Both the position numbers and the translations under genes were made by a program. The notes beneath the pieces are model-generated. The model saw only the letters and a program-made list of their open reading frames with translations. It was not told the origin of the DNA and ran no database searches. From contig JAXLNO010004965.1 of assembly GCA_038087875.1 (NCBI GenBank), positions 1-45,098 of the forward strand: 45,098 nucleotides of DNA, in the 5' to 3' direction. Below, piece by piece: positions 3,162-44,526 of the stretch. Within the stretch, counting starts at the first letter, position 1. The number at the start of each line of letters is the position of its first letter. The stretch is from Malacoraja senta. Its lineage: Eukaryota.

Positions 3162-3595
3162 GCTCCAAGAACTTAATATGTTCCTCCCTCTGACTCTTGA
3201 GATTCCTCCTTATCCCTTTCTAAAGATACATCATGTTATTCTGAGAAATGTGTTTGCCAAGACCATGGCATCTGCAGTTTTAGTCTCCTGATCTTAGGAA
3301 GAAAGTTCTTGTTATGGAGGGAGTGCTGTGAAGGTTCATCAGATTTCAGGGATGGGAGGACGAATGTATGAAGGGCGATTTGGGCGATTGGTTTTACATT
3401 GTGATTAGGACCATTCAAAATCAACTAAAACATTCTTATGGGTCTGTACAGATTGAAGAGAGTCAAGAGTGTTTTATTGTCATATGTCCCAGATAGCACA
3501 ATGACATTCTTACTCGCTGCAGCACAATGGAATATGTAAACATAGTACATGGTAAACAATATGAAAAACGAGAAAGAGAAAAACAAAATCAATGT

Positions 3596-8624: not shown

Positions 8625-8665
8625 TTAGCAGTGCATGTTCTGCTTTGGTTGAATATTTTGATAAT
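8625..8665 (-). CDS. Candidate terminal cytoplasmic exon (D-YQNI-QPKQNMHC-stop)
   Basis: Branch-like TCTAAT and tract TTTAATTTCCCTCCTCAG|AT. The phase-1 frame gives (D)YQNIQPKQNMHC*. There is a minus-strand AATAAA at 8568-8573. Linkage to the TM exon across about 24.6 kb of mostly TE sequence is inferred. Confidence 0.55.
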
Positions 8666-9336: not shown

Positions 9337-10272
9337 ATGACGGCCAGGGCAGTTTACTGTTCTGGATGTCAGATGTGGGAAGTAATGGAGTCTGTTAGCC
9401 CTCCAGACGTCCACATCTGCGCCAGGTGTATCGAGATGGGGCTCCTAATGGACCGTATTAGGAACCTGGAGCAGCAGCTCGATGACCTCCGTCTGGTCAG
9501 GGAGAGCGAGGAAGTCATTGAGAGGAGTTACAGGGATGTGGTCACTCCAACACCACAGGAGGCAGGCAAGTGGATCACGGTTGGGAGAGGCAAGGGGCAC
9601 AGGCAGGGACTAGAGAGTACCCCGGTGGCTGTACACCTTGACAATAAGTACTCCTGTTTGAGCACTGTTGGGGTGGACAGCCTACCTGGGGGTAGCGACA
9701 GCGGCCGGGCCTCCGGTATAGAGACTGGTCCTGTTGCTCAGAAGGGTAAGGAAAAGAAGAGGAGGGCAATATTAATAGGGGACTCTATAGTTAGGGGGTC
9801 AGACAGGCGATTCTGTGGACGCAGTCGGGAGACCCGGATGGTAGTTTGCCTCCCTGGTGCCAGGGTCTGTGATGTGTCCCAACGTGTCCAAGACATCCTG
9901 AAAGGGCAGGGAGAGGAGCCCGAGGTCGTGATACATATAGGTACCAATAACATAGGTAAAAAAAGAGAAGAGGTCCTGAAAGGAGAATTTAGGGAGTTAG
10001 GAGGGGAGTTAAAGAGAAGGACAGCAAAGGTAACAATCTCGGGATTACTGCCTGTACCACGCGACAGTGAGAGTAGGAATGGAGCGAGGTGGAGGATAAA
10101 TGCGTGGCTGAAGGACTGGTGCAGAAGGCAGGGATTCAAATTTCTGGATCATTGGGACTTCTTTTGTGGAAGGTTCGACCTGTACAAAAAGGATGGGTTG
10201 CACTTGAACCTGAGGGGGACCGATATCCTGGCGGGGAGATCTGCAAAGGCTACTGGGGAGACTTTAAACTAG
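9337..10272 (+). CDS. CR1 ORF1p: N-terminal Cys motif/coiled coil plus SGNH (GDSL) esterase domain
   Basis: MTARAVYCSGC...CARC, then a heptad region, then the esterase blocks LIGDSIVRG, CLPGA, HIGTNN and DGLHL. The first ATG is at 9337. Confidence 0.92.
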   Translation: MTARAVYCSGCQMWEVMESVSPPDVHICARCIEMGLLMDRIRNLEQQLDDLRLVRESEEVIERSYRDVVTPTPQEAGKWITVGRGKGHRQGLESTPVAVHLDNKYSCLSTVGVDSLPGGSDSGRASGIETGPVAQKGKEKKRRAILIGDSIVRGSDRRFCGRSRETRMVVCLPGARVCDVSQRVQDILKGQGEEPEVVIHIGTNNIGKKREEVLKGEFRELGGELKRRTAKVTISGLLPVPRDSESRNGARWRINAWLKDWCRRQGFKFLDHWDFFCGRFDLYKKDGLHLNLRGTDILAGRSAKATGETLN

Positions 10273-13200
10273 AATGGTTGGGGGGAGGGACTCAAATAGA
10301 GAATGCTATTAGACAGTGTGTGAGGCAGGAGGCAGAGAAGGAAAGCACTCAGACCCAACATGTAGGGGGGAAAGAAGAAAACAATAATAAACAGAGAATA
10401 AGAGGTGGTGGGGTTCTTAAATGGGTGAGCAGAGAAACAGAGGGGTGTAAAATGCGGGCGGAAGCAATAGGTAGCAAGGTGAAAGGTAAAAGTGGCAGGC
10501 AGACAAATCCAGGACAAAAATCAAAAAGAGCCACTTTTCAACATAATTGTATAAGGGGTAAGAGCGTTGTAAAAACAAGTCTGAAGGCTTTGTGTCTCAA
10601 TGCAAGGAGCATTCGTAATAAGGTGGATGAGTTGAACGTGCAGATAGCAATTAATGATTATGATATAGTTGGGATCACGGAGACATGGCTCCAAGGTGAC
10701 CAAGGCTGGGAGCTGAACATCCAGGGATATTCAATATTCAGGAGGGATAGAGAGAAAGGAAAAGGAGGTGGGGTGGCGTTGCTGGTTAGAGAGGAGATTA
10801 ACGCAGTGGAAAGGAAGGACATTAGCTTGGAGGATGTGGAATCGGTATGGGTAGAGCTGCGAAACACTAAGGGGCAGAAAACGCTGGTGGGCGTTGTGTA
10901 CAGGCCACCTAGCAGTAGTAGTGAAGTTGGGGATGGCATCAAACAGGAAATTAGAAATGCGTGCAACAAAGGCAAAACAGTTATAATGGGTGACTTCAAT
11001 CTACATATAGATTGGGTGAATCAAATTGGCAGGGGTGCTGAGGAAGAGGATTTCTTGGAATGTATGAGGGATAGTTATCTAAACCAACATGTAGAGGAAC
11101 CAACGAGAGAGCAGGCTATTCTAGACTGGGTATTGAGTAATGAGGAAGGGTTAGTTAGCAGACTTGTTGTGCGTGCCCCCTTGGGCAAGAGTGATCATAA
11201 TATGGTTGAGTTCTTCATTAGGATGGAGAGTGACATTGTTAATTCAGAAACAACGGTTCTGAACTTAAAGAAAGGTAACTTTGAGGGTATGAGACATGAA
11301 TTGGCCAAGATTGACTGGCAATTAGTTCTAAAAGGGTTGACGGTGGATATGCAATGGAAGGCATTTAAAGACTGCATGGATGAACTACAAAAATTGTTCA
11401 TCCCAGTTTGGCAAAAGAATAAATCAAGGAAGGTAGTGCATCCGTGGATAACAAGGGAAATCAGGGATAGTATCAAAGCAAAAGATGATGCGTACAAATT
11501 AGCCAGAAAAAGCAGCATACCAGAGGACTGGGAGAAATTCAGAGACCAGCAGAGGAGGACAAAGGGCTTAATTAGGAAAGGGAAAATAGATTATGAAAGG
11601 AAACTGGCAGGGAACATAAAAACTGACTGCAAAAGTTTTTATAGATATGTGAAGAGAAAGAGATTAGTTAAATCAAATGTAGGTCCCTTGCAGTCAGAAA
11701 CAGGTGAATTGATCATGGGGAACAAGGATATGGCAGACCAATTGAATAACTACTTTGGTTCCGTCTTCACTAAGGAAGACATAAATAATCTGCCGGAAAT
11801 AGCAGGGGGCCGCGGGTCAAAGGAGATGGAGGAACTGAGTGAAATCCAGGTTAGTCGGGAAGTGGTGTTGGGTAAATTGAATGGATTAAAGGCCGATAAA
11901 TCACCAGGGCCAGATAGGCTGCATCCCAGAGTACTTAAGGAAGTAGCTCCAGAAATAGTGGATGCATTAGTGATAATTTTTCAAAACTCTTTAGATTCTG
12001 GAGTAGTTCCTGAGGATTGGAGGGTAGCAAACGTAACCCCACTTTTTAAGAAGGGAGGGAGAGAGAAAACGGGGAATTACAGACCAGTTAGTCTAACATC
12101 GGTAGTGGGGAAACTGCTAGAGTCAGTTATTAAAGATGGGATAGCAGCACATTTGGAAAGTGGTGAAATCATTGGACAAAGTCAGCATGGATTTACGAAA
12201 GGTAAATCGTGTCTGACGAATCTTATAGAATTTTTCGAGGATGTAACTAGTAGAGTGGATAGGGGAGAACCAGTGGATGTGTTGTATCTGGACTTTCAGA
12301 AGGCTTTCGACAAGGTACCACATAAGAGATTAGGATACAAACTTAAATCACACGGTATTGGGGGTTCAGTATTGATGTGGATAGAGAACTGGCTGGCAAA
12401 CAGGAAGCAAAGAGTAGGAGTAAACGGGTCCTTTTCACAATGGCAGGCAGTGACTAGTGGGGTACCACAAGGCTCAGTGCTGGGACCCCAGCTATTTACA
12501 ATTTATATTAATGATCTGGACGAGGGAATTGAAAGCAACATCTCCAAGTTTGCGGATGACACTAAGCTGGGGGGCAGTGTTAGCTGTGAGGAGGATGCTA
12601 GGAGACTGCAAGGTGACTTGGATAGGCTGGGTGAGTGGGCAAATGTTTGGCAGATGCAGTATAATGTGGATAAATGTGAGGTTATCCACTTTGGTAGCAA
12701 AAACGGGAAGGCAGACTATTATCTAAATGGTGGCCGATTAGGAAATGGGGAGATGCAGCGAGACCTGGGTGTCATGGTACACCAGTCATTGAAAGTAGGC
12801 ATGCAGGTGCAGCAGGCAGTGAAGAAAGCGAATGGTATGTTGGCCTTCATAGCAAGAGGATTTGAGTATAGGAGCAGTGAGGTTCTACTGCAGTTGTACA
12901 GGGTCTTGGTGAGACCACACCTGGAGTATTGCGTACAGTTTTGGTCTCCAAATCTGAGGAAGGACATTATAGCCATAGAGGGAGTGCAGAGAAGGTTCAC
13001 CAGACTGATTCCTGGGATGTCAGGACTTTCATATGAAGAAAGACTGGATAGACTTGGCTTATACTCGCTAGAATTTAGGAGATTGAGAGGGGATCTTATA
13101 GAAACGTACAAGATTCTTATGGGGTTGGACAGGCTAGATGCAGGAAGATTATTCCCGATGTTGGGGAAGTCCAGGACAAGGGGTCACAGCTTAAGGATAA

Positions 13201-13388
13201 GGGGAAAATCCTTTAAGACCGAGATGAGGAAAAACGTTTTCACACAGAGAGTGGTGAATCTCTGGAACTCTCTGCCACAGAGGGTAGTTGAGGCCAGTTC
13301 ATTGGCTATATTTAAGAGGGAATTAGATGTGGCCCTTGTGGCTAAAGGGATCAGGGGGTATGGAGAGAAGGCAGGTACGGGATACTGA
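10089..13388 (+). CDS. CR1 ORF2p: APE endonuclease + reverse transcriptase
   Basis: Open for 1099 codons. EN motifs CLNARS, GITETW, GDFN and SDH; RT motifs [18 protein letters not shown] and KFADD. The first ATG is at 10452. Confidence 0.95.
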   Translation: MEDKCVAEGLVQKAGIQISGSLGLLLWKVRPVQKGWVALEPEGDRYPGGEICKGYWGDFKLEWLGGGTQIENAIRQCVRQEAEKESTQTQHVGGKEENNNKQRIRGGGVLKWVSRETEGCKMRAEAIGSKVKGKSGRQTNPGQKSKRATFQHNCIRGKSVVKTSLKALCLNARSIRNKVDELNVQIAINDYDIVGITETWLQGDQGWELNIQGYSIFRRDREKGKGGGVALLVREEINAVERKDISLEDVESVWVELRNTKGQKTLVGVVYRPPSSSSEVGDGIKQEIRNACNKGKTVIMGDFNLHIDWVNQIGRGAEEEDFLECMRDSYLNQHVEEPTREQAILDWVLSNEEGLVSRLVVRAPLGKSDHNMVEFFIRMESDIVNSETTVLNLKKGNFEGMRHELAKIDWQLVLKGLTVDMQWKAFKDCMDELQKLFIPVWQKNKSRKVVHPWITREIRDSIKAKDDAYKLARKSSIPEDWEKFRDQQRRTKGLIRKGKIDYERKLAGNIKTDCKSFYRYVKRKRLVKSNVGPLQSETGELIMGNKDMADQLNNYFGSVFTKEDINNLPEIAGGRGSKEMEELSEIQVSREVVLGKLNGLKADKSPGPDRLHPRVLKEVAPEIVDALVIIFQNSLDSGVVPEDWRVANVTPLFKKGGREKTGNYRPVSLTSVVGKLLESVIKDGIAAHLESGEIIGQSQHGFTKGKSCLTNLIEFFEDVTSRVDRGEPVDVLYLDFQKAFDKVPHKRLGYKLKSHGIGGSVLMWIENWLANRKQRVGVNGSFSQWQAVTSGVPQGSVLGPQLFTIYINDLDEGIESNISKFADDTKLGGSVSCEEDARRLQGDLDRLGEWANVWQMQYNVDKCEVIHFGSKNGKADYYLNGGRLGNGEMQRDLGVMVHQSLKVGMQVQQAVKKANGMLAFIARGFEYRSSEVLLQLYRVLVRPHLEYCVQFWSPNLRKDIIAIEGVQRRFTRLIPGMSGLSYEERLDRLGLYSLEFRRLRGDLIETYKILMGLDRLDAGRLFPMLGKSRTRGHSLRIRGKSFKTEMRKNVFTQRVVNLWNSLPQRVVEASSLAIFKRELDVALVAKGIRGYGEKAGTGY

Positions 13389-14428
13389 GTTGGATGATCA
13401 GCCATGATCGTATTGAATGGCGGTGCAGGCTCGAAGGGCCGAATGGCCTACTCCTGCACCTAATTTCTATGTATCTATGTATCTATGTATCATTGGTTGG
13501 TGCGGACTCAGTGGACCGAAGTGTCTGTTTCAATGCTCTCTCTCTAAACTAAACAAAAACTCAATACTCCTTCAAATAGTTTCGTTCACACATTTTCTAT
13601 GTTTTCTAACTTTCGCCTCCACACTAGGGTCAAATTACAGAGACCAATTAACCCATAAAACCTGGCATCTTTAGTATGTGTGTGAAAACTGGAGGACAGT
13701 GGAAACCCATGCGGTCATAGGGAATACATGCAAACTTCACACAGCCGACAACCGAGGTTAGGATTGAACTGATGTGTATGACGCACTGAGGCAGCAACTC
13801 TATCAGCAGCGCCACTCTGCCTCAGGTTGCGTCATGTTCAGCACAAACGTTGTTGGACAAAGGACCTGTTCTTCTATTACAGGGGCATTCCCATTCACCG
13901 TAAAATTCAGCGAACTCAGCACCATTGGGTCACTGGAAATATTCCCTGCCTGACCATCAGATCCCTCCAGATCAGTCGGACAGACACCAGTTAGGCAGAA
14001 TCTGCCTGCAAATGATTCATGTCCCTCAAACCCCTGCATCTCCATGCACCCACGAAGGTGCACCCCAGACGCCACCATCCCTGGCAGTGCTTTCCAGGCA
14101 CACACCACATAGTATGTAATAAAAACTTGCCCTTTTTAAAAAACTGCAGCTTCTACCCTGCACTGAATATAATGCAATAATTTAAATGCCATAGTAGGCA
14201 TTTAGTTAATTGGGATAATTTTAGTCAATTGGGAGGTGTGATTGCAAATCTTGTACAATATCATAAACCAAGTAAAATGTGACAGAGTGGCGCTATGGAG
14301 GCTTGAGTCCAGCGCCAACTAGCTCCGTGCCGAAGAAACTAAAAACGGGAGAAAATCGGGTCTTACCTGCAGCGATCACGATTTGAACGGCTGCCTGCGT
14401 GACGTCATCAGGCGCGCTACTTTACGGT

Positions 14429-33285: not shown

Positions 33286-33393
33286 CTCTCCTCTTTTTTC
33301 TCCACCAAACAATTACTGCCAAGACAATAGCCAGCAATATCAGCACACACACGGCAATAAGGCCTATGTGCCTGTCTTTCTGCCTATTTCCTT
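33286..33393 (-). CDS. Connecting peptide + transmembrane exon of the MHC class I-like gene
   Basis: Acceptor TTCTTATTTTTCAG|AA and donor AGAG|GTAAGA. The exon is 108 nt, phase 1-1, and encodes (E)GNRQKDRHIGLIAVCVLILLAIVLAVIVWWRKKRR(G/D): a hydrophobic helix followed by a basic stop-transfer cluster. It is on the same strand and in the same phase as the C1 exon. Confidence 0.85.
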
Positions 33394-34398
33394 CTGAAAA
33401 ATAAGAATGCATAATTTTACAAATCAATTGTTAAGCTGTGCAGTTAAATAGATGGGCACTGTCTGAAGACTTCAGAGTGAAGAAGGGTCTCGACCCGAAA
33501 TGCAACCTATTCCTTTTCTCAAGAGATGTTACCTGACCGCTGAGTTACTCCAGCATTTTGTGTCTATCTTTGGCGCTTTTCAAGGTATATAAGATGATAT
33601 GGTGTTTTGAATCACGGAGTTCTGCAGCATGGCAAAGGGACAATATATGTTCTGTACAACTCTATGATCTATGGCACCATCACAGCCACAACTTAATTCA
33701 AGAAAGAAGGTGAATTGAAAGCAGAAAGCTTTAACCCTATATAAACTAACATTTGTTTTGGGGAAAATGCTGGATTCCTTTCAATAATGGCAGAACATTT
33801 AAGTAATAACAAAACAATAAAGTGCATTATCAGAGTATTAACAGGAAAATTGTAGAAAGAAAGAGATGCAGATACTGATTTACACAAAAGCTTTAGTTTA
33901 GTTTATTGTCACATGTATTGAGGTACAGTGAAAAGCTTTTGTTACGTGCTAACCAGTCAGTGGAAAGAATATACATAATAGACACAAAATGCTGGAGTAA
34001 CTCAGCGGAACAGGCAGCATCTCTGGCGAACATGGATTCATCACCTATTCCTTTTCTCCAGAGATGCTGCCTGACCAGCTGAGTTATTCCAGCAATTTGT
34101 GTCCATCTTCGGTGTAAACCAGCATTTGCAGTTTCTTCTTACACATGGACAGGTGACGTTTCGTTTTGGGACCCTTCTTCAAACTTTGTTTGAGAAATTG
34201 ATTAGAATTCTTTGAAAATGCAACAGGAACCCGTAGACAATGTATATTCGAGCAGCAGGTGTGCACAGTCTAAAATTCAAAAACAAAATGATGGAAAAGC
34301 AGAATAGGTAACAAAATTGGAATGAGAAACGAAAGAAATACAATATATTGCAGAGATCCAAACGTCGTGAACAAATCAATGTTTTTTTAAAGAAATAC

Positions 34399-34579
34399 AG
34401 TTTTGGCACACTCGTGTTTAGTAAGGACTTGAGCAAAGTTCCTGCCGTTGTTATCGGGCACACCAGTTGACTGGCGACTGATTCATCACCAACTCCCACC
34501 AAAACCCTGTCATGTGATAGTCCCAGCTCCCCTAACGAGGGTTCTAGCAATAAGTGGCCTGACCACCAGATGTCGCACA
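34399..34579 (-). mobile_element. Degenerate solo LTR related to the 41449-41735 LTR
   Basis: The minus strand begins ATAT|TGTG...GGCCACTTAT(T)GCT(A)GAACCCTCGTTAGG, matching the other LTR, and ends ...CACGAGTGTGCC. Flanks are ATAC/ATAT. Confidence 0.65.
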
Positions 34580-35142
34580 ATATCTGGATTTTCATAAGAT
34601 ATCAATCAAGTGATGCAAAGGCTTATGACATTGGGGGTAATAATTAGCATGAATGGAAAAAACAATTTAGAGCAAGCAGAGAGTTGTCTTAAAGGAGTGT
34701 TCAGGTTGGGAAACTGCAACTGCAGGTTGGGAAACAATGCAAGAAAGTGAACTACTTATGGTTGGTATTAAGAGCAGATGAAGGGACTGATGGCGCTGTA
34801 GCCTAGATTGCTGATGATACATAGATAGGTTGGAAATTAAGTTCTGGAGTATGTCAACAGTCTTCAGAGTGAAACATCAGATTCCTTAGTTGTGCATTGT
34901 TCGAGGGAATCTTCAAAAGTGAGCATTTGTGTAGGTTAGTGCAGCATACTTGGAATCAAACTACTACGATCGCTGTTTGTCAGGCAGTTATATTTTTCGT
35001 TGCTGAATCTGTAACTTGCGTCAGGGAACTTATTTCATTCGGTTTTGTTTTATTAATGCCAGATGTTTCAAAATACAGAGCAAAGGTTTGTTTTGTATGC
35101 TATCCAAACAAATTATAAAACTATACATAAATACAAACTCAA

Positions 35143-38100
35143 ATACATAGATACATAGATACATAGAAAATAGGTGCAGGAGTAGGCCATTCGGCCCTTC
35201 GATCCTGCACCGCCATTCAATACGATCATGGCTGATCATCCAACTCAGTATCCCGTACCTGCCTTCTCTCCATACCCCCTGATCCCTTTAGCCACAAGGG
35301 CCACATCTAATTCCCTCTTAAATATAGCCAATGAACTGGCCTCAACTACCCTCTGTGGCAGAGAGTTCCAGAGATTCACCACTCTCTGTGTGAAAAAGTT
35401 TTTCCTCATCTCGGTCTTAAAGGATTTCCCCCTTATCCTTAAGCTGTGACCCCTTGTCCTGGACTTCCCCAACATCGGGAACAATCTTCCTGCATCTAGC
35501 CTGTCCAACCCCATAAGAATGTTGTACGTTTCTATAAGATCCCCTCTCAATCTCCTAAATTCTAGCGAGTATAAGCCAAGTCTATCCAATCTTTCTTCAT
35601 ATGAAAGTCCTGACATCCCAGGAATCAGTCTGGTGAACCTTCTCTGCACTCCCTCTATGGCTATAATGTCCTTCCTCAGATTTGGAGACCAAAACTGTAC
35701 GCAATACTCCAGGTGTGGTCTCACCAAGACCCTGTACAACTGCAGTAGAACCTCCCTGCTCCTATACTCAAATCCTCTTGCTATGAAGGCCAACATACCA
35801 TTCGCTTTCTTCACTGCCTGCTGCACCTGCATGCGTACTTTCAATGACTGGTGTACCATGACACCCAGGTCTCGCTGCATCTCCCCATTTCCTAATCGGC
35901 CACCATTTAGATAATAGTCTGCCTTCCCGTTTTTGCTACCAAAGTGGATAACCTCACATTTATCCACATTATACTGCATCTGCCAAACATTTGCCCACTC
36001 ACCCAGCCTATCCAAGTCACCTTGCAGTCTCCTAGCATCCTCCTCACAGCTAACACTGCCCCCAGCTTAGTGTCATCCGCAAACTTGGATATGTTGCTTT
36101 CAATTCCCTCGTCCAGATCATTAATATAAATTGTAAATAGCTGGGGTCCCAGCACTGAGCCTTGCGGTACCCCACTAGTCACTGCCTGCCATTGTGAAAA
36201 GGACCCGTTTACTCCTACTCTTTGCTTCCTGTTTGCCAGCCAGTTCTCTATCCACATCAATACTGAACCCCCAATACCGTGTGATTTAAGTTTGTATCCT
36301 AATCTCTTATGTGGTACCTTGTCGAAAGCCTTCTGAAAGTCCAGATACAACACATCCACTGGTTCTCCCCTATCCACTCTACTAGTTACATCCTCGAAAA
36401 ATTCTATAAGATTCGTCAGACACGATTTACCTTTCGTAAATCCATGCTGACTTTGTCCAATGATTTAACCACTTTCCAAATGTGCTGCTATCCCATCTTT
36501 AATAACTGACTCTAGCAGTTTCCCCACTACCGATGTTAGACTAACTGGTCTGTAATTCCCCGTTTTCTCTCTCCCTCCCTTCTTAAAAAGTGGGGTTACG
36601 TTTCCTACCCTCCAATCCTCAGGAACTACTCCAGAATCTAAAGAGTTTTGAAAAATTATCACTAATGCATCCACTATTTCTGGAGCTACTTCCTTAAGTA
36701 CTCTGGGATGCAGCCTATCTGGCCCTGGTGATTTATCGTCCTTTAATCCATTCAATTTACCCAACACCAATTCCCGACTAACCTGGATTTCACTCAGTTC
36801 CTCCATCTGCTTTGACCCGCGGCCCCCTGCTATTTCCGGCAGATTATTTATGTCTTCCTTAGTGAAGACGGAACCAAAGTAGTTATTCAATTGGTCTGCC
36901 ATATCCTTGTTCCCCATGATCAATTCACCTGTTTCTGACTGCAAGGGACCTACATTTGATTTAACTAATCTCTTTCTCTTCACATATCTATAAAAACTTT
37001 TGCAGTCAGTTTTTATGTTCCCTGCCAGTTTCCTTTCATAATCTATTTTCCCTTTCCTAATTAAGCCCTTTGTCCTCCTCTGCCGGTCTCTGAATTTCTC
37101 CCAGTCCTCTGGTATGCTGCTTTTTCTGGCTAATTTGTACGCATCATCTTTTGCTTTGATACTATCCCTGATTTCCCTTGTTATCCACGGATGCACTACC
37201 TTCCTTGATTTATTCTTTTGCCAAACTGGGATGAACAATTTTTGTAGTTCATCCATGCAGTCTTTAAATGCCTTCCATTGCATATCCACCGTCAACCCTT
37301 TTAGAACTAATTGCCAGTCAATCTTGGCCTATTCACGTCTCATACCCTCAAAGTTACCTTTCTTTAAGTTCAGAACCGTTGTTTCTGAATTAACAATGTC
37401 ACTCTCCATCCTAATGAAGAACTCAACCATATTATGATCACTCTTGCCCAAGGGGGCACGCACAACAAGTCTGCTAACTAACCCTTCCTCATTACTCAAT
37501 ACCCAGTCTAGAATAGCCTGCTCTCTCGTTGGTTCCTCTACATGTTGGTTTAGATAACTATCCCTCATACATTCCAAGAAATCCTCTTCCTCAGCACCCC
37601 TGCCAATTTGATTCACCCAATCTATATGTAGATTGAAGTCACCCATTATAACTGTTTTGCCTTTGTTGCACGCATTTCTAATTTCCTGTTTGATGCCATC
37701 CCCAACTTCACTACTACTGCTAGGTGGCCTGTACACAACACCCACCAGCGTTTTCTGCCCCTTAGTGTTTCGCAGCTCTACCCATACCGATTCCACATCC
37801 TCCAAGCTAATGTCCTTCCTTTCCACTGCGTTAATCTCCTCTCTAACCAGCAACGCTACCCCACCTCCTTTTCCTTTCTCTCTATCCCTCCTGAATATTG
37901 AATATCCCTGGATGTTCAGCTCCCAGCCTTGGTCACCTTGGAGCCATGTCTCCGTGATCCCAACTATATCATAATCATTAATTGCTATCTGCACGTTCAA
38001 CTCATCCACCTTATTACGAATGTTCCTTGCATTGAGACACAAAGCCTTCAGGCTTGTTTTTACAACGCTCTTACCCCTTATACAATTATGTTGAAAAGTG

Positions 38101-38673
38101 GCTCTTTTTGATTTTTGCCTTGGATTTGTCTGCCTGCCACTTTTACCTTTCACCTTGCTACCTATTGCTTCCGCCCGCATTTTACACCCCTCTGTTTCTC
38201 TGCTCACCCATCTAAGAACCCCACCACCTCTTATTCTCTGTTTATTATTGTTTTCTTCTTTCCCCCCTACATGTTGGGTCTGAGTGATTTCCTTCTCTGC
38301 CTCCTGCCTCACACACTGTCTAATAGCATTCCCTATTTGAGTCCCTCCCCCCAACCATTCTAGTTTAAAGTCTCCCCAGTAGCCTTTGCAGATCTCCCCG
38401 CCAGGATATCGGTCCCCCTCAGGTTCAAGTGCAACCCATCCTTTTTGTACAGGTCGAACCTTCCACAAAAGAAGTCCCAATGATCCAGAAATTTGAATCC
38501 CTGCCTTCTGCACCAGTCCTTCAGCCACGCATTTATCCTCCACCTCGTTCCATTCCTACTCTCACTGTCGCGTGGTACAGGCAGTAATCCCGAGATTGTT
38601 ACCTTTGCTGTCCTTCTCTTTAACTCCCCTCCTTAACTCCCTAAATTCTCCTTTCAGGACCTCTTCTCTTTTT
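35143..38673 (-). mobile_element. 5'-truncated copy of the young CR1 family
   Basis: Near-identical to about 9960-13488. ORF2 is broken by stops (about 37329 and 36465) and a 1-G deletion at about 36060. Same (TCTATGTA)n tail. Confidence 0.95.
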
Positions 38674-38699
38674 CTCTACAATAGATAGAGCAAAGAGGA

Positions 38700-39250
38700 G
38701 GATACAGAGTACAGAATATAGTTCTCAGCATTGTAACGCATCAGTTCCATAGACAATGTGCAATGAGGTTGAGGTGAATCGGGCATTGAACCTACATTAT
38801 GGAAGGACCCTTCCGAAGCCTGTTAACAGATGGAAAGGGGGTGTTCCTGAGTCTGGCAGTGTATACTTTCTACTTTCTGTACCTATTGCCTGATGGGAGC
38901 AGGAAGGAGGAATGACCGGGTGGGATAAGTCTCGTTTTCGAAGGCAACCTGGTGTAGACTGAATCAATAGTGGGAAGTCTGGGCTGTGTGATGATCTTTA
39001 ACTCTTTGTATATTCTTGCAGTCTTGGGCAGTGCAGTTCCCAAATCAAGATGTGATGCAACCCAACAACATGCTTTCTCTAGCAGCATCAATAGATGTTT
39101 GCTAGAGTCACCAGAGACATGATGAATATTCTCAGTCTCCGGAGGAAGTAGAGGTGTTAGTGTGCCTCCTTGGCTATGTGGCCAGTCCATGACCGAATAT
39201 TGGATAAATTCATGCCAAGGAACATGAAGCTCTCAATCATTTCCGCTTCG
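38700..39250 (-). mobile_element. Decayed Rex1-like LINE fragment
   Basis: Remnant translation LPTIDSVYT...PGHSSFLLPSGNRYR. Confidence 0.7.
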
Positions 39251-39603
39251 GACCATTGATTTGGATTGGGGCATGTACTCCCCCAGTGCCTTGCTGTTAA
39301 TCACATCATGAGGAAAGATTCATTTTTTATTTAAACATACCTTTTATGGATTTCATTTCCACTACTGAGAATCTCAAATACTCCTTCCTTGTATATTAGT
39401 TAGTTATTTACTTTTGATAAATTTTCTGTTGACAAAGTCTTCTGCTCATGTGGAGAGTGTGTGCTGATTACGTGATTGCTTAGAGCAACACCACTAAACA
39501 AAGAAAGTTTAAGCATCTTGGAATATGGGATGTAGTCACAATGATTAAAATGGAAACAACAGAAGATAATGATTATCTATGAAAGAATATTTAATGTTCT
39601 TAT

Positions 39604-39869
39604 CCCAGATGATGGTCTTCCCACCGGGCAGGCTGCTGTGATCGACATGACAGGAATACTGTTCCCATCATACGGATCATACTCAAGGACAAACTTTAGA
39701 TGATATGTTCCATCGTTGTTGGGTATGACCCCAGAAGATTTGGTCTCAGAGACATGTTGACCATTCTGCAACCAGCTGACATTGATGGCTGGTGGGTAAA
39801 ATCCAAACACAGTGCAGTACAGGACTGATTGGTCATCAGGGCGGGCAGCGAGAGATACCTCATGGGAAA
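39604..39869 (-). pseudogene. Ig C1-set exon, MHC class I alpha3-like, with a 1-bp frameshift and a mutated splice donor
   Basis: Acceptor CTTACTGTCTTGTAG|TT at 39870. The phase-1 frame reads xSHEVSLAARPDDQSVLYCTVFGFYPPAINVSWLQNGQHVSETKSSGVIPNNDGTYHLKFVLEYDPYDGN. After a 1-nt gap at about 39659 it continues YSCHVDHSSLPGGKTIIW-G. The two Cys are about 55 aa apart, and GFYP, W, PxxDGTY and YSCxVxHSSL are C1-set hallmarks. Exon length is 266 nt (267 expected). The donor reads G|ATAAGA instead of G|GTAAGA. Confidence 0.9.
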
Positions 39870-40299
39870 CTACAAGACAGTAAGATGGTTATTTTCACCT
39901 TCAGTAAAACTTGCACAGTCACCCACCACAAAATATTCTTCAGTCTACTACAACAACCAAGTTACTGTCCACATCTGCCCCATTTTGCCTCTTTCGTCCC
40001 ATCAACCAACCACGTGGTGTAAAAGGGATCGTACGCTCCCTGTTAAGACAGTACACAACAAAGTTTGAAAGTACGTACCATTAAATTCAGGAACAGTTGC
40101 TTCCCCACTGTTATTGGACTACTTAATGATTCTCATGTAAGAGAAGATGTTGTCCTGATCTTCCAACCAATCTCATTGTGAACCTTGCAACTCTTTTTGA
40201 TCTGCACTTTCTCTGTAACTGTAATGCTATGATATTGTAACCCGATATTCTGCACTCTGAGTAGTTTTCTCTTTGCACTGATCTACTTGTGGAAGGCTT

Positions 40300-41385
40300 A
40301 CATAGATACATAGATACATAGAAAATAGGTGCAGGAGTAGGCCATTCGGCCCTTCGAGCCTGCACCGCCATTCAATACGATCATGGCTGATCATCCAACT
40401 CAGTATCCCGTACCTGCCTTCTCTCCATACCCCCCTGATCCATTTAGCCACAAGGGCCACATCTAATTCCCTCTTAAATATTGCCAATGAACTGGCCTCA
40501 ACTACCCTCTGTGGCAGAGAGTTCCAGAGATTCACCACTCTCTGTGTGAAAAAGTTTTTCCTCATCTCGGTCTTAAAGGATTTCCCCTTATCCTTAAGCT
40601 GTGACCCCTTGTCCTGGACTTCCCCAACATCGGGAACAATCTTCCTGCATCTAGCCTGTCCAACCCCATAAGAATTTTGTACGTTTCTATAAGATCCCCT
40701 CTCAATCTCCTAAATTCTAGCGAGTATAAGCCAAGTCTATCCAGTCTTTCTTCATATGAAAGTCCTGACATCCCAGGAATCAGTCTGGTGAACCTTCTCT
40801 GCACTCCCTCTATGGCTATAATGTCCTTCCTCAGATTTGGAGACCAAAACTGTACGCAATACTCCAGGTGTGGTCTCACCAAGACCCTGTACAACTGCAG
40901 TAGAACCTCGCTGCTCCTATACTCAAATCCTCTTGCTATGAAGGCCAACGTACCATTCGCTTTCTTCACTGCCTGCTGCACCTGCATGCCTACTTTCAAT
41001 GACTGGTGTACCATGACACCCAGGTCTCGCTGCATCTCCCCATTTCCTAATCGGCCACCATTTAGATAATAGTCTGCCTTCCCGTTTTTGCTACCAAAGT
41101 GGATAACCTCACATTTATCCACATTATACTGCATCTGCCAAACATTTGCCCACTCACCCAGCCTATCCAAGTCACCTTGCAGTCTCCTAGCATCCTCCTC
41201 ACAGCTAACACTGCCCCCCAGCTTAGTGTCATCCGCAAACTTGGAGATGTTGCTTTCAATTCCCTCGTCCAGATCATTAATATAAATTGTAAATAGCTGG
41301 GGTCCCAGCACTGAGCCTTGCGGTACCCCACTAGTCACTGCCTGCCATTGTGAATAGGACCCGTTTACTCCTACTCCTACTCTTT
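40300..41385 (-). mobile_element. Third copy (3' 1.1 kb) of the young CR1 family, inserted in a Rex-type 3' UTR remnant
   Basis: Matches 12410-13488. GCTT flanks both sides (40296-40299 and 41386-41389). The 5' junction has a CTCCTA duplication. Confidence 0.93.
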
Positions 41386-41448
41386 GCTTGATTGCACATG
41401 TGTAGTATGATCTGATTGGATGACACACAGACACACTTTTGACTATAT

Positions 41449-41735
41449 TGTGGCGGCAGCCTAAACACGGGCCACTTATGCTCGAACCCTCGTTAGGAAG
41501 TACGAGGGCGGGCACGTGACGTCATGGGCTAGAGGGAGTGTCCTGGTACTTAAGGTCATCTCACCTCGAGACCTTGAGGATTTCAACCTGTATCTGAGCC
41601 CGAGGGAACAACCTCGCTCAGCTACAGCAACACTGTTATGATAGTCGGCACCAACCTAACGTGTCAGCACTGAATAAACGACTCTTTGAACCGGCTGACG
41701 TCTCACCTTTATTCACCACGTTTGGTGCCGCTACA
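41449..41735 (+). mobile_element. Solo LTR (Gypsy-like), 287 bp
   Basis: TG...CA ends with terminal inverted repeat TGTGGCGGCA / TGCCGCTACA (9/10), 4-bp TSD ATAT, overlapping E-box/CRE CACGTGACGTCA (41513-41524) and AATAAA. Confidence 0.88.
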
Positions 41736-43036: not shown

Positions 43037-43330
43037 CAGGGCTCGAAATTAGCGGTTGCCCGGTTCCCATGGCAACTTACAGTCCCGCCGGGCAACCTAA
43101 AAGCCATGCCATTTTGCCCGCTTGGCAAGCAACCGGGACACCCGCCCGCCCGCCCGCCATCCGTGTCCAGGTCTCGGGTCTCCGCTCTCGGGTCTCCGCT
43201 CTCGGGTCTCGGGTCTCCGCACGGCACGGCCGGCCGCCGAGCCCTGCACATGCGCATTGCCACGGCAACTGGTCGGCGTCGGCCACTTTCTCCCTCCCTT
43301 TGCATTGTGGGAGTTCTGGCCGCCATTGCT
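43037..43330. other. CpG-rich segment: probable hAT-like transposon end with promoter-like motifs
   Basis: Starts CAGGGCTCGAAATT. It has a 10-bp inverted repeat (43054-43063 / 43088-43097), a 14-bp tandem CTCGGGTCTCCGCT, and RFX-type palindromes. No matching TSD was found. Confidence 0.45.
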
Positions 43331-44526
43331 GTCCGGTCGCTGCCTCAGCTGGAGTAACTCTTGCTTCTTGGTTTCCAGGTCCTCCAAAAATATTCGAAAT
43401 GGAATTTAAACTTGTGCACCCACCACCACCAAACTCGAAACTGAAAAATAACAGCCTATTGCATTTTATCCGTTTATTTATTGTGTATATATATGGTCTA
43501 TAGTATAGAGACGCACTGAACTTTTATCTCCTGTTCTGTATTATGTTTACATATTCTGTTGTGCTGCAGCAAGCAAGAATTTCATTGTCCTATCTGGGAC
43601 ACATGACAATAAAACTCTCTTGACTCTTGACTTGGACTTAAGCAAAAAAGGGTTCTTGGGGGAAAAAAACGACCTTAAATTTAGTTGCAACTGCTTGGGT
43701 ACCTATAGTAGGGTGACAACTATTCCATGCTTTAATTGTGCTGGGGAACTCCATGGAGCAGCCAGCATCTCTGGATAGAAAAAATTGAGTGACATTTCTG
43801 GTAGAAACCCTTCTTTACATTTCCTCTGGTTTTAGTGTTTTTTGTTTAATTTAAAGATACAGTGTGGAAGCAGGCCCTTCGGCCCACTGAGTCCACGCCG
43901 ACCACTGATCACCCGTACTCTAGTTCTATCCCACACATCAGCAACGTAAGTCAAGACTGTTTTATTCTCTCACGTCCCAGTTAGAACAATGAAATCCTTA
44001 CTTGCAGCAGCACAACAGAATATGTAAACATAGTACTCTGTAAACAATGTTATAAACGAGAAAACAAAACTCCACACAGACAGCACCCATATTCAGGATC
44101 AATTCTGGGTCTCTGGCAATATTAGGCAGCCAATTTATGGGCAATGTACTGCCCAATAGCCTTGAACTGATTTAAGCATACAGTAGGTGTAAAGTGGGAC
44201 ATAGCGTCACTTAGAGATTTAAGACTGAAAATGGATAGTTTCTTTTTTTTAGTAACCAAAGTTATCAACGTATAATGTTTTGTGTGTTGGAAAATAAAAT
44301 ATAATGGCACAGCTGGTGGATTTGCTGCCTCACACGCCAGAGACCTGTGTTCGATTCTGTTCTCGGGCACTGTCTGTGTTGAATTTGCACATTCTCCCTG
44401 CAATCATGTGGGTTCCCTCCCACATCCCAAAGACGCATTGGCTTTGTAGGTTAACTTGTCTCTGTAAAATTGCGCCTAATGTGCAGGAGTGGGTGAGGAA
44501 AGTGGGATAACAGAACTTGTGTGAAT

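Follow-up and report, generated by a model that had tools for sequence, protein, structure and literature searches.

A class I-like gene whose alpha3 exon is broken twice while its transmembrane (TM) exon is undamaged may be a pseudogene or a live gene that has dispensed with alpha3, and this is the question raised by a locus in the skate Malacoraja senta (assembly GCA_038087875.1, contig JAXLNO010004965.1). The whole stretch of DNA that was analysed, referred to here as the window, covers 45,098 nucleotides. Its minus strand carries an alpha3 (C1-set) exon, a TM exon and a tail exon encoding YQNI, which are the 3′ three exons of a class I-like gene. An earlier note, made from the letters of the sequence, had offered both readings: a recent pseudogene or null allele on the one hand, and a gene splicing alpha2 straight to TM on the other.

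Identity and lineage of the locus

The three exons are as follows, with the exon/intron boundary in splice motifs marked by a slash.

39604-39869, minus strand: alpha3 (Ig C1-set) exon, 266 nt against 267 expected, with bounds taken from the alignment to five intact loci
33286-33393, minus strand: connecting-peptide/TM exon, open, with acceptor TTTTTCAG, donor AGAG/GTAAGA and one private replacement (Lys/Arg to Gln)
8625-8665, minus strand: last coding exon, D-YQNIQPKQNMHC-stop, with acceptor CCTCCTCAG and one or two private replacements (Asn to Lys, Pro/Arg to His)

The intact comparators comprise five genomic loci from three species, namely one from Leucoraja erinacea (L001), one from Amblyraja radiata (L003) and three from Rhinoraja longicauda (L004-L006). 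At the protein level, the comparators are A. radiata XP_032898133.1 (P0154), L. erinacea XP_055521885.1 (P0156), and R. longicauda XP_078272153.1 and nine others (P0164, P0178-P0186).

The Pfam C1-set model PF07654 matches the residues encoded by 39867-39664 with E=1.8e-13 and 51.1 bits, against a cut-off of 21. A phmmer search with the 68 in-frame alpha3 residues retrieved full-length relatives, the nearest being an L. erinacea protein (P0004) with 85% identity, whose cluster contains A. radiata and L. erinacea genes together with three transcript-derived proteins of 334 amino acids. At the DNA level, the window alpha3 is 92.6% identical to an L. erinacea mRNA contig (L002) and 93-95% identical to the intact skate loci. 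Homology also extends beyond the exons: the window aligns collinearly with A. radiata, introns included, at 88-92% identity, and exon phases and order (alpha3, TM, tail) match the intact loci, the tyrosine-based YxxI tail having a last exon to itself. The DYQNI tail itself (8665-8625) is conserved in A. radiata, L. erinacea and R. longicauda. Intron identity is 86-89% to the three Rhinoraja copies and 88-92% to Amblyraja and Leucoraja, and intron site patterns in the 1.6 kb around alpha3, compared over six loci with Rhinoraja as the outgroup, make Amblyraja+Leucoraja the sister group of the window copy.

The best PDB match of the window alpha3 is 9ch4_A (E=2.3e-20), and among solved structures the same chain also comes closest to the intact skate protein (E=8.6e-118, residues 27-292). 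This chain, deposited as an ‘Ig-like domain-containing protein’, is a shark class I-like heavy chain and is probably the CD1-like structure mentioned in PMC12562908. Judged by its sequence, the window copy is a skate member of the CD1-like MHC class I lineage that includes the shark protein of PDB 9ch4. Two names have been used for such genes: UFA and UGA are cited as CD1-like solely by way of personal communication in one review (PMC12562908), and UFA as unpublished data in another paper (PMC10751288). The lineage label UGA is adopted here provisionally.

The two lesions of the alpha3 exon

Three features mark the damage to alpha3.

39662-39663, minus strand: frameshift, AAA to AA (GGGAAACAG to GGGAACAG), from the alignment and from the extra base in contigs of other runs
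39602-39603, minus strand: alpha3 splice donor changed from GT to AT (G/ATAAGA), from the alignment to five intact loci
39577-39579, minus strand: premature TAG in the shifted frame, on reading into the intron, from translation

At the first site, all five intact loci read GATGGGAAACAGTATTCC, while the window reads GATGGGAACAGTATTCC; because a single A is missing from a run of three, the deletion is placed at 39663-39662. A 1-nt deletion outside any long homopolymer had been claimed at about 39659, and such a deletion does exist, in a run of three A residues, about 4 nt away from that position. The donor change had been located correctly: the intact loci (5/5) read ATCTGGG/GTAAG, whereas the window reads ATCTGGG/ATAAG, with A at 39603. 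A U12-type AT-AC intron was considered for this donor and rejected, the motif ATAAGA being unlike the consensus ATATCC.

Translation of the minus strand from 39869 to 39590 gives frame A up to ...LEYDPYDGN and then frame B, YSCHVDHSSLPGGKTIIW. The conserved cysteines are split between the two, with LYCTV in frame A and YSCHV in frame B after the 1-nt deletion, so that after the frameshift YSCHVDH..., which contains the second Ig cysteine, is no longer in frame. Read-through of the shifted frame ends in ...SIPVMSITAACPVGRPSSGIRTLNILS at the TAG at 39579-39577, which is the terminal peptide already predicted for the truncated product. The out-of-frame alpha3 tail of 20 residues, queried alone, gave no PDB match, the query being too short. 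Aside from these two lesions, the Pro of the S-P-E-V motif, invariant in 17 shark and ray homologues, is His in the window.

Loss of the donor could in principle be compensated by a cryptic one. Enumeration of GT dinucleotides revealed that the GT at 39659 (ACA/GTATTC) is in frame (phase 1-1) only owing to the 1-nt loss, and its use would yield a 210-nt exon encoding a shortened alpha3 without strands F and G. The site, however, is a weak match to the donor consensus (C at -2, A at -1, T at both +4 and +5), no RNA evidence was found for it, and its product, without the second Ig cysteine, could not fold as a C1-set domain. Rescue through this donor is scarcely credible.

As read from the alignments, both lesions are derived states in the assembly, since the five intact comparators from three species all have AAA and GT. 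Contigs of four runs (X1, X2, X3 and X20) that are at least 95% alike were further compared over the unique 1.6 kb around alpha3; these runs represent relatives or paralogues of the window copy and not the sequenced individual. At position 39603, all X1, X2 and X3 contigs read C on the plus strand, corresponding to an intact GT donor, and the base deleted from the window is present in them as an extra base. Contigs of X1 and X20 also show clipped ends at the deletion site, T+CCCATCAT, consistent with the extra base. The same contigs are ancestral at the remaining private exon sites of the window. On this comparison of contigs the lesions are private to the window copy, since every covering contig in X1-X3 has the intact states. 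Word depth in X1 and X2 reaches the thousands, in intron and exon alike, which suggests that the segment is highly repeated in the X1/X2 organism, although this depth does not translate into a copy number.

These data also bear on whether the gene is live and its lesions stem from errors of assembly or polishing, or from an allele that is null in the sequenced haplotype. In a highly repeated family, mis-polishing from paralogous reads is conceivable; in addition, all contigs covering both sites carry the intact states, and the TM and tail exons are intact. Mis-polishing from paralogues would nevertheless bring in the common intact states, not private ones, and the deleted base lies within a 3-nt run with no long homopolymer. 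Moreover, His at the invariant Pro adds a third harmful change to this exon, and about 40 more private changes occur in the 1.6 kb, in exon and intron alike, for which reason the two lesions fit a general drift of the window copy. Error or a haplotype-specific null in an otherwise live gene is thus an improbable account of the locus.

Drift, insertions and the upstream half

Private substitutions on the window branch amount to 5/266 sites (1.9%) in alpha3, in addition to the one deletion and the donor change, and to 31/1198 ungapped sites (2.6%) in the flanking intron. Pooled coding substitutions of the three exons (7/417 nt) do not differ significantly from the intron (Fisher p=0.35, substitutions only), and the exon has drifted at an intron-like rate. 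The private coding changes divide into replacement and silent changes as 3:2 in alpha3, 1:0 in TM and 1-2:0 in the tail. A dN/dS comparison had been proposed in the earlier note; taken on the window branch over alpha3, TM and tail, it gives about 0.7 over 417 nt, with replacements predominating, a value that rests on 7-8 events and fits no constraint, moderate constraint being compatible as well.

The earlier note had attached weight to the confinement of both lesions to alpha3 and to the pristine state of the TM exon. The pattern itself is correct. Its significance does not hold: alpha3 with its splice sites makes up ~63% of the visible coding target, so that two random disabling changes would both fall in alpha3 ~40% of the time, and private replacements are found in the TM and tail exons as well. 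The ‘only alpha3 hit’ pattern carries no weight, and ‘TM pristine’ amounts only to 108+41 coding nt without a disabling change.

Within those limits, the description of the two downstream exons was accurate. Both are open and share their splice-site sequences with the intact loci, and the TM exon does end at 33286; the G at 33394 that BLAST appends to this exon is the G of the acceptor. Homology in the 3′UTR continues past the tail exon to about 5116. That TM and tail are still open and retain perfect splice sites is an observation that speaks against a pseudogene.

The introns of the window copy have been invaded by retrotransposons, and its homology to the intact loci ends upstream.

35145-38677, minus strand: LINE copy A, a non-LTR retrotransposon encoding RT, in the alpha3-TM intron and in the same orientation as the gene; a clean insertion, the sites being empty in A. 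radiata and L. erinacea
40300-41732, minus strand: inserted block in the alpha2-alpha3 intron; its portion 40301-41376 (copy B) corresponds to the 3′ part of that LINE family and contains an RVT_1 ORF
9960-13487, plus strand: LINE copy C, within the TM-tail intron and opposite in orientation to the gene, from sequence comparison
43037-43038, no strand: last point of collinearity with the intact A. radiata and L. erinacea loci, which falls within sequence that is uninterrupted in these two species

LINE A (3.5 kb) is 95.8% identical to A. radiata copies and 99.1% identical to LINE copy C, and the three LINE copies are young, being ~99% alike. The TM-tail intron measures 24.6 kb in the window versus 4.4-6.8 kb in the intact loci.

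From 43037 to the end of the window (~2 kb), the sequence consists of dispersed repeats and an unmatched GC-rich piece. A tblastn search of the whole window with four homologues found no alpha1 or alpha2 exon. In intact loci, the distance from alpha2 to alpha3 is 2.8 kb (Rhinoraja), 9.7 kb (Leucoraja) or 20 kb (Amblyraja); since alpha2 lies 2.8-20 kb upstream in these loci, it may lie past the window end, and its absence from the window is not proof of loss. With the upstream half of the gene beyond the window or absent, the state of alpha1 and alpha2 is not readable from the window, a further observation that counts against a pseudogene.

Very probably, then, the window holds the 3′ three exons of a non-functional copy (pseudogene) of a skate CD1-like class I gene in neutral decay. 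This first of the two original readings is supported by the private derived lesions, the intron-like drift, the replacements in TM and tail, and the young LINEs. Loss of function of the copy as a whole, along with lack of expression, is what we infer from these features, and at best the copy would be a null member of this multi-copy skate CD1-like class I family. In the history proposed here, the window branch, sister to the Amblyraja+Leucoraja gene, has drifted with no detectable constraint. During this drift, it acquired the 1-nt deletion in alpha3, the G>A change of the donor and His at the invariant Pro, the TM and tail replacements, and insertions of three young LINEs. Were the copy transcribed, its dead donor would most likely lead to alpha3 skipping or to intron read-through to the stop; nothing in the data points to a product being made or used.

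Alpha3 skipping and comparison with known systems

Donor mutations often lead to exon skipping, and class I-like products that lack alpha3 are known in the form of HLA-G4-type alpha3-skipped isoforms, ULBP/RAET1 and EPCR. The second of the original readings is that the window copy is such a gene, in which the dead donor forces alpha2 to join TM in frame and yields a beta2m-independent alpha1-alpha2-TM-YQNI molecule. The frame argument is sound: exon phases (1-1) permit the join, and isoform X4 of the L. erinacea gene, predicted by NCBI Gnomon (P0169), runs ...TYLTRK/EGNGKKDRH..., with alpha2 directly followed by TM. This model is chimeric, being fused by read-through to an adjacent gene for a GPR139-like receptor. 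The intact TM and tail exons with their splice sites are likewise in keeping with a live gene of this kind.

Several results point the other way. The window contains no alpha1 or alpha2 exon and its homology to intact loci breaks at 43037; every private change in TM and tail is a replacement, with no sign of constraint on these exons; the frameshift, lying in an exon that would never be used, gives no added support; and both changes would be expected in alpha3 by chance as often as calculated above. A search with an alpha3-less ectodomain joined to TM returned only C1-set-containing proteins among database representatives, and two skate protein clusters that were examined have no alpha3-less member, so that no stand-alone alpha3-less protein of the lineage was found in either set.

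Transcript data were sought in public runs. No run matching the window copy well was found among them, the best shares being 0.29-0.33 in runs of unknown kind. None of the RNA runs queried with the copy-specific last exon contains the copy (shares 0.04-0.08), with the limit that the Logan contigs searched prove presence and not absence. X20 looks like RNA of a relative: one of its contigs joins 28 nt of alpha2 (...AIGKTYLTRE) directly to alpha3, and a second is clipped at 39603, which would fit an alpha3-TM join. Taken together, these contigs suggest that an intact copy, ~96.5% identical to the window, is spliced normally from alpha2 to alpha3 (and on to TM).

A live alpha3-less gene at this locus is therefore very unlikely, and it is just as doubtful that the window copy, or a subset of skate copies, is transcribed and obligately spliced from alpha2 to TM. 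Were this true, the molecule would be an alpha1-alpha2 platform that is independent of beta2m and carries a YQNI endosomal tail. It would be the counterpart, in sharks and rays, of ULBP/EPCR-type molecules, with its origin in a lipid-presenting lineage.

Returning to the reading of a decayed copy, the likeness of the window copy to known alpha3-less systems lies in exon phase. As with HLA-G4-type isoforms, ULBP and EPCR, an alpha3-less product is formally available, the phase 1-1 exons allowing an in-frame join of alpha2 to TM in the window lineage. Those molecules are, however, expressed products, whereas for the window copy no transcript, upstream exons or constraint were found. PDB 9ch4 represents an intact shark protein; in contrast, the window copy cannot encode alpha3 strands F and G in frame.

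The closest likeness is to the intact skate genes themselves. Those of A. radiata, L. erinacea and R. longicauda share with the window the W/EGN... connecting peptide and the DYQ(N/T)I tail. In comparison with them, the window copy differs by its alpha3 frameshift, its AT donor and His in place of the invariant Pro, by the lack of alpha1 and alpha2 within the window, and by its expanded TM-tail intron and LINE insertions, the latter having no counterpart at the loci of A. radiata and L. erinacea.

In itself, the window copy is of little import, as another decayed copy in an expanded gene family. The family as a whole offers a broader comparison. The CD1-like lineage in sharks and rays has been described as single- or low-copy (PMC12562908), while R. 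longicauda has at least 10 annotated copies of the UGA-type gene on one chromosome, and the lineage is clearly multi-copy in skates. Since it is multi-copy, annotation and expression work must tell live from dead copies. As for alpha3 skipping, it preserves the frame in this lineage and figures among the Leucoraja predictions as a minor isoform, and alpha3-less forms are better studied in the intact genes.

Transposable elements and the upstream break in collinearity

Three copies of one LINE family lie in the window, within 33 kb of sequence:

35145-38677, minus strand, LINE copy
40301-41376, minus strand, LINE copy
9960-13487, plus strand, LINE copy

Copies of this family terminate in a (CTATGTAT)n tail. 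Pairwise identity among the three is 98.8-99.1%, but falls to 94-96% against the A. radiata and L. erinacea copies and to 90-92% against those of Rhinoraja. The family was recently active in the window's genome.

Towards the upstream end, an inverted repeat is found that resembles a MITE or a small DNA transposon:

43538-43625 and 43949-44036, inverted repeat pair of 88 bp, 85% complementary, with about 320 bp between the arms

A related piece is located 40 kb away in the window (3459-3575), and relatives are also present in the Rhinoraja and Amblyraja loci. Adjacent to this element, a GC-rich segment of 0.5 kb (43038-43536) containing short GAGACCCGAGAGCG-type repeats begins at the exact point at which the window stops being collinear with the intact gene loci; 310 kb of sequence from related loci contains nothing that matches it. 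This segment may mark the edge of a rearrangement or duplication, or may itself be an insertion of uncharacterised type.

Gene models in related skates and the adjoining receptor gene

In two annotated skate proteins of the same CD1-like lineage, the model runs past an intact alpha3 donor into the intron, namely P0157 from the intact L. erinacea locus L001 (XP_055486429.1, C-terminus …IIWGKNVKYSFIDNHYLLLFPF) and P0180 from R. longicauda (XP_078272227.1, C-terminus …IVWGKDVKNYFIDRRS). The same read-through peptide is encoded, in the unshifted frame, by the window's intron. As modelled, both proteins represent predicted forms that are soluble or truncated, or else putative copies without the downstream exons.

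The L. erinacea gene LOC129716032 is represented by isoforms X1-X4 (P0152, P0153, P0155 and P0169), with alpha1 left out in the NCBI model of isoform X3 and alpha3 in that of X4. In the NCBI models, read-through beyond the TM exon also joins the L. erinacea class I-like gene to the adjoining GPR139-like 7TM receptor gene. Since a 7tm_1 gene likewise adjoins the class I-like gene in two Rhinoraja copies (L005, 48821-51201; L006, 49547-49600), the receptor gene may have been duplicated together with its class I neighbour. The window contains no receptor gene of this kind.

Copy number of the CD1-like gene

In the public sequencing runs X1 and X2, whose library type is not given, word depth over 38680-40298 reaches thousands in intron and exon alike, about 50-fold lower than at the adjoining LINE edge, and hundreds of variant contigs, 95-99% alike, cover this segment. 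The gene segment appears strongly amplified in the organism of these runs, although the depth sets no copy number. According to a review (PMC12562908), sharks and rays have the CD1-like lineage in a single copy or at low copy number; one Rhinoraja longicauda chromosome (CM130181.1) carries at least 10 annotated CD1-like copies over 12 Mb, mostly full-length (334 aa), including the following:

CM130181.1, 26.4 Mb, copy L004
CM130181.1, 31.6 Mb, copy L005
CM130181.1, 38.5 Mb, copy L006
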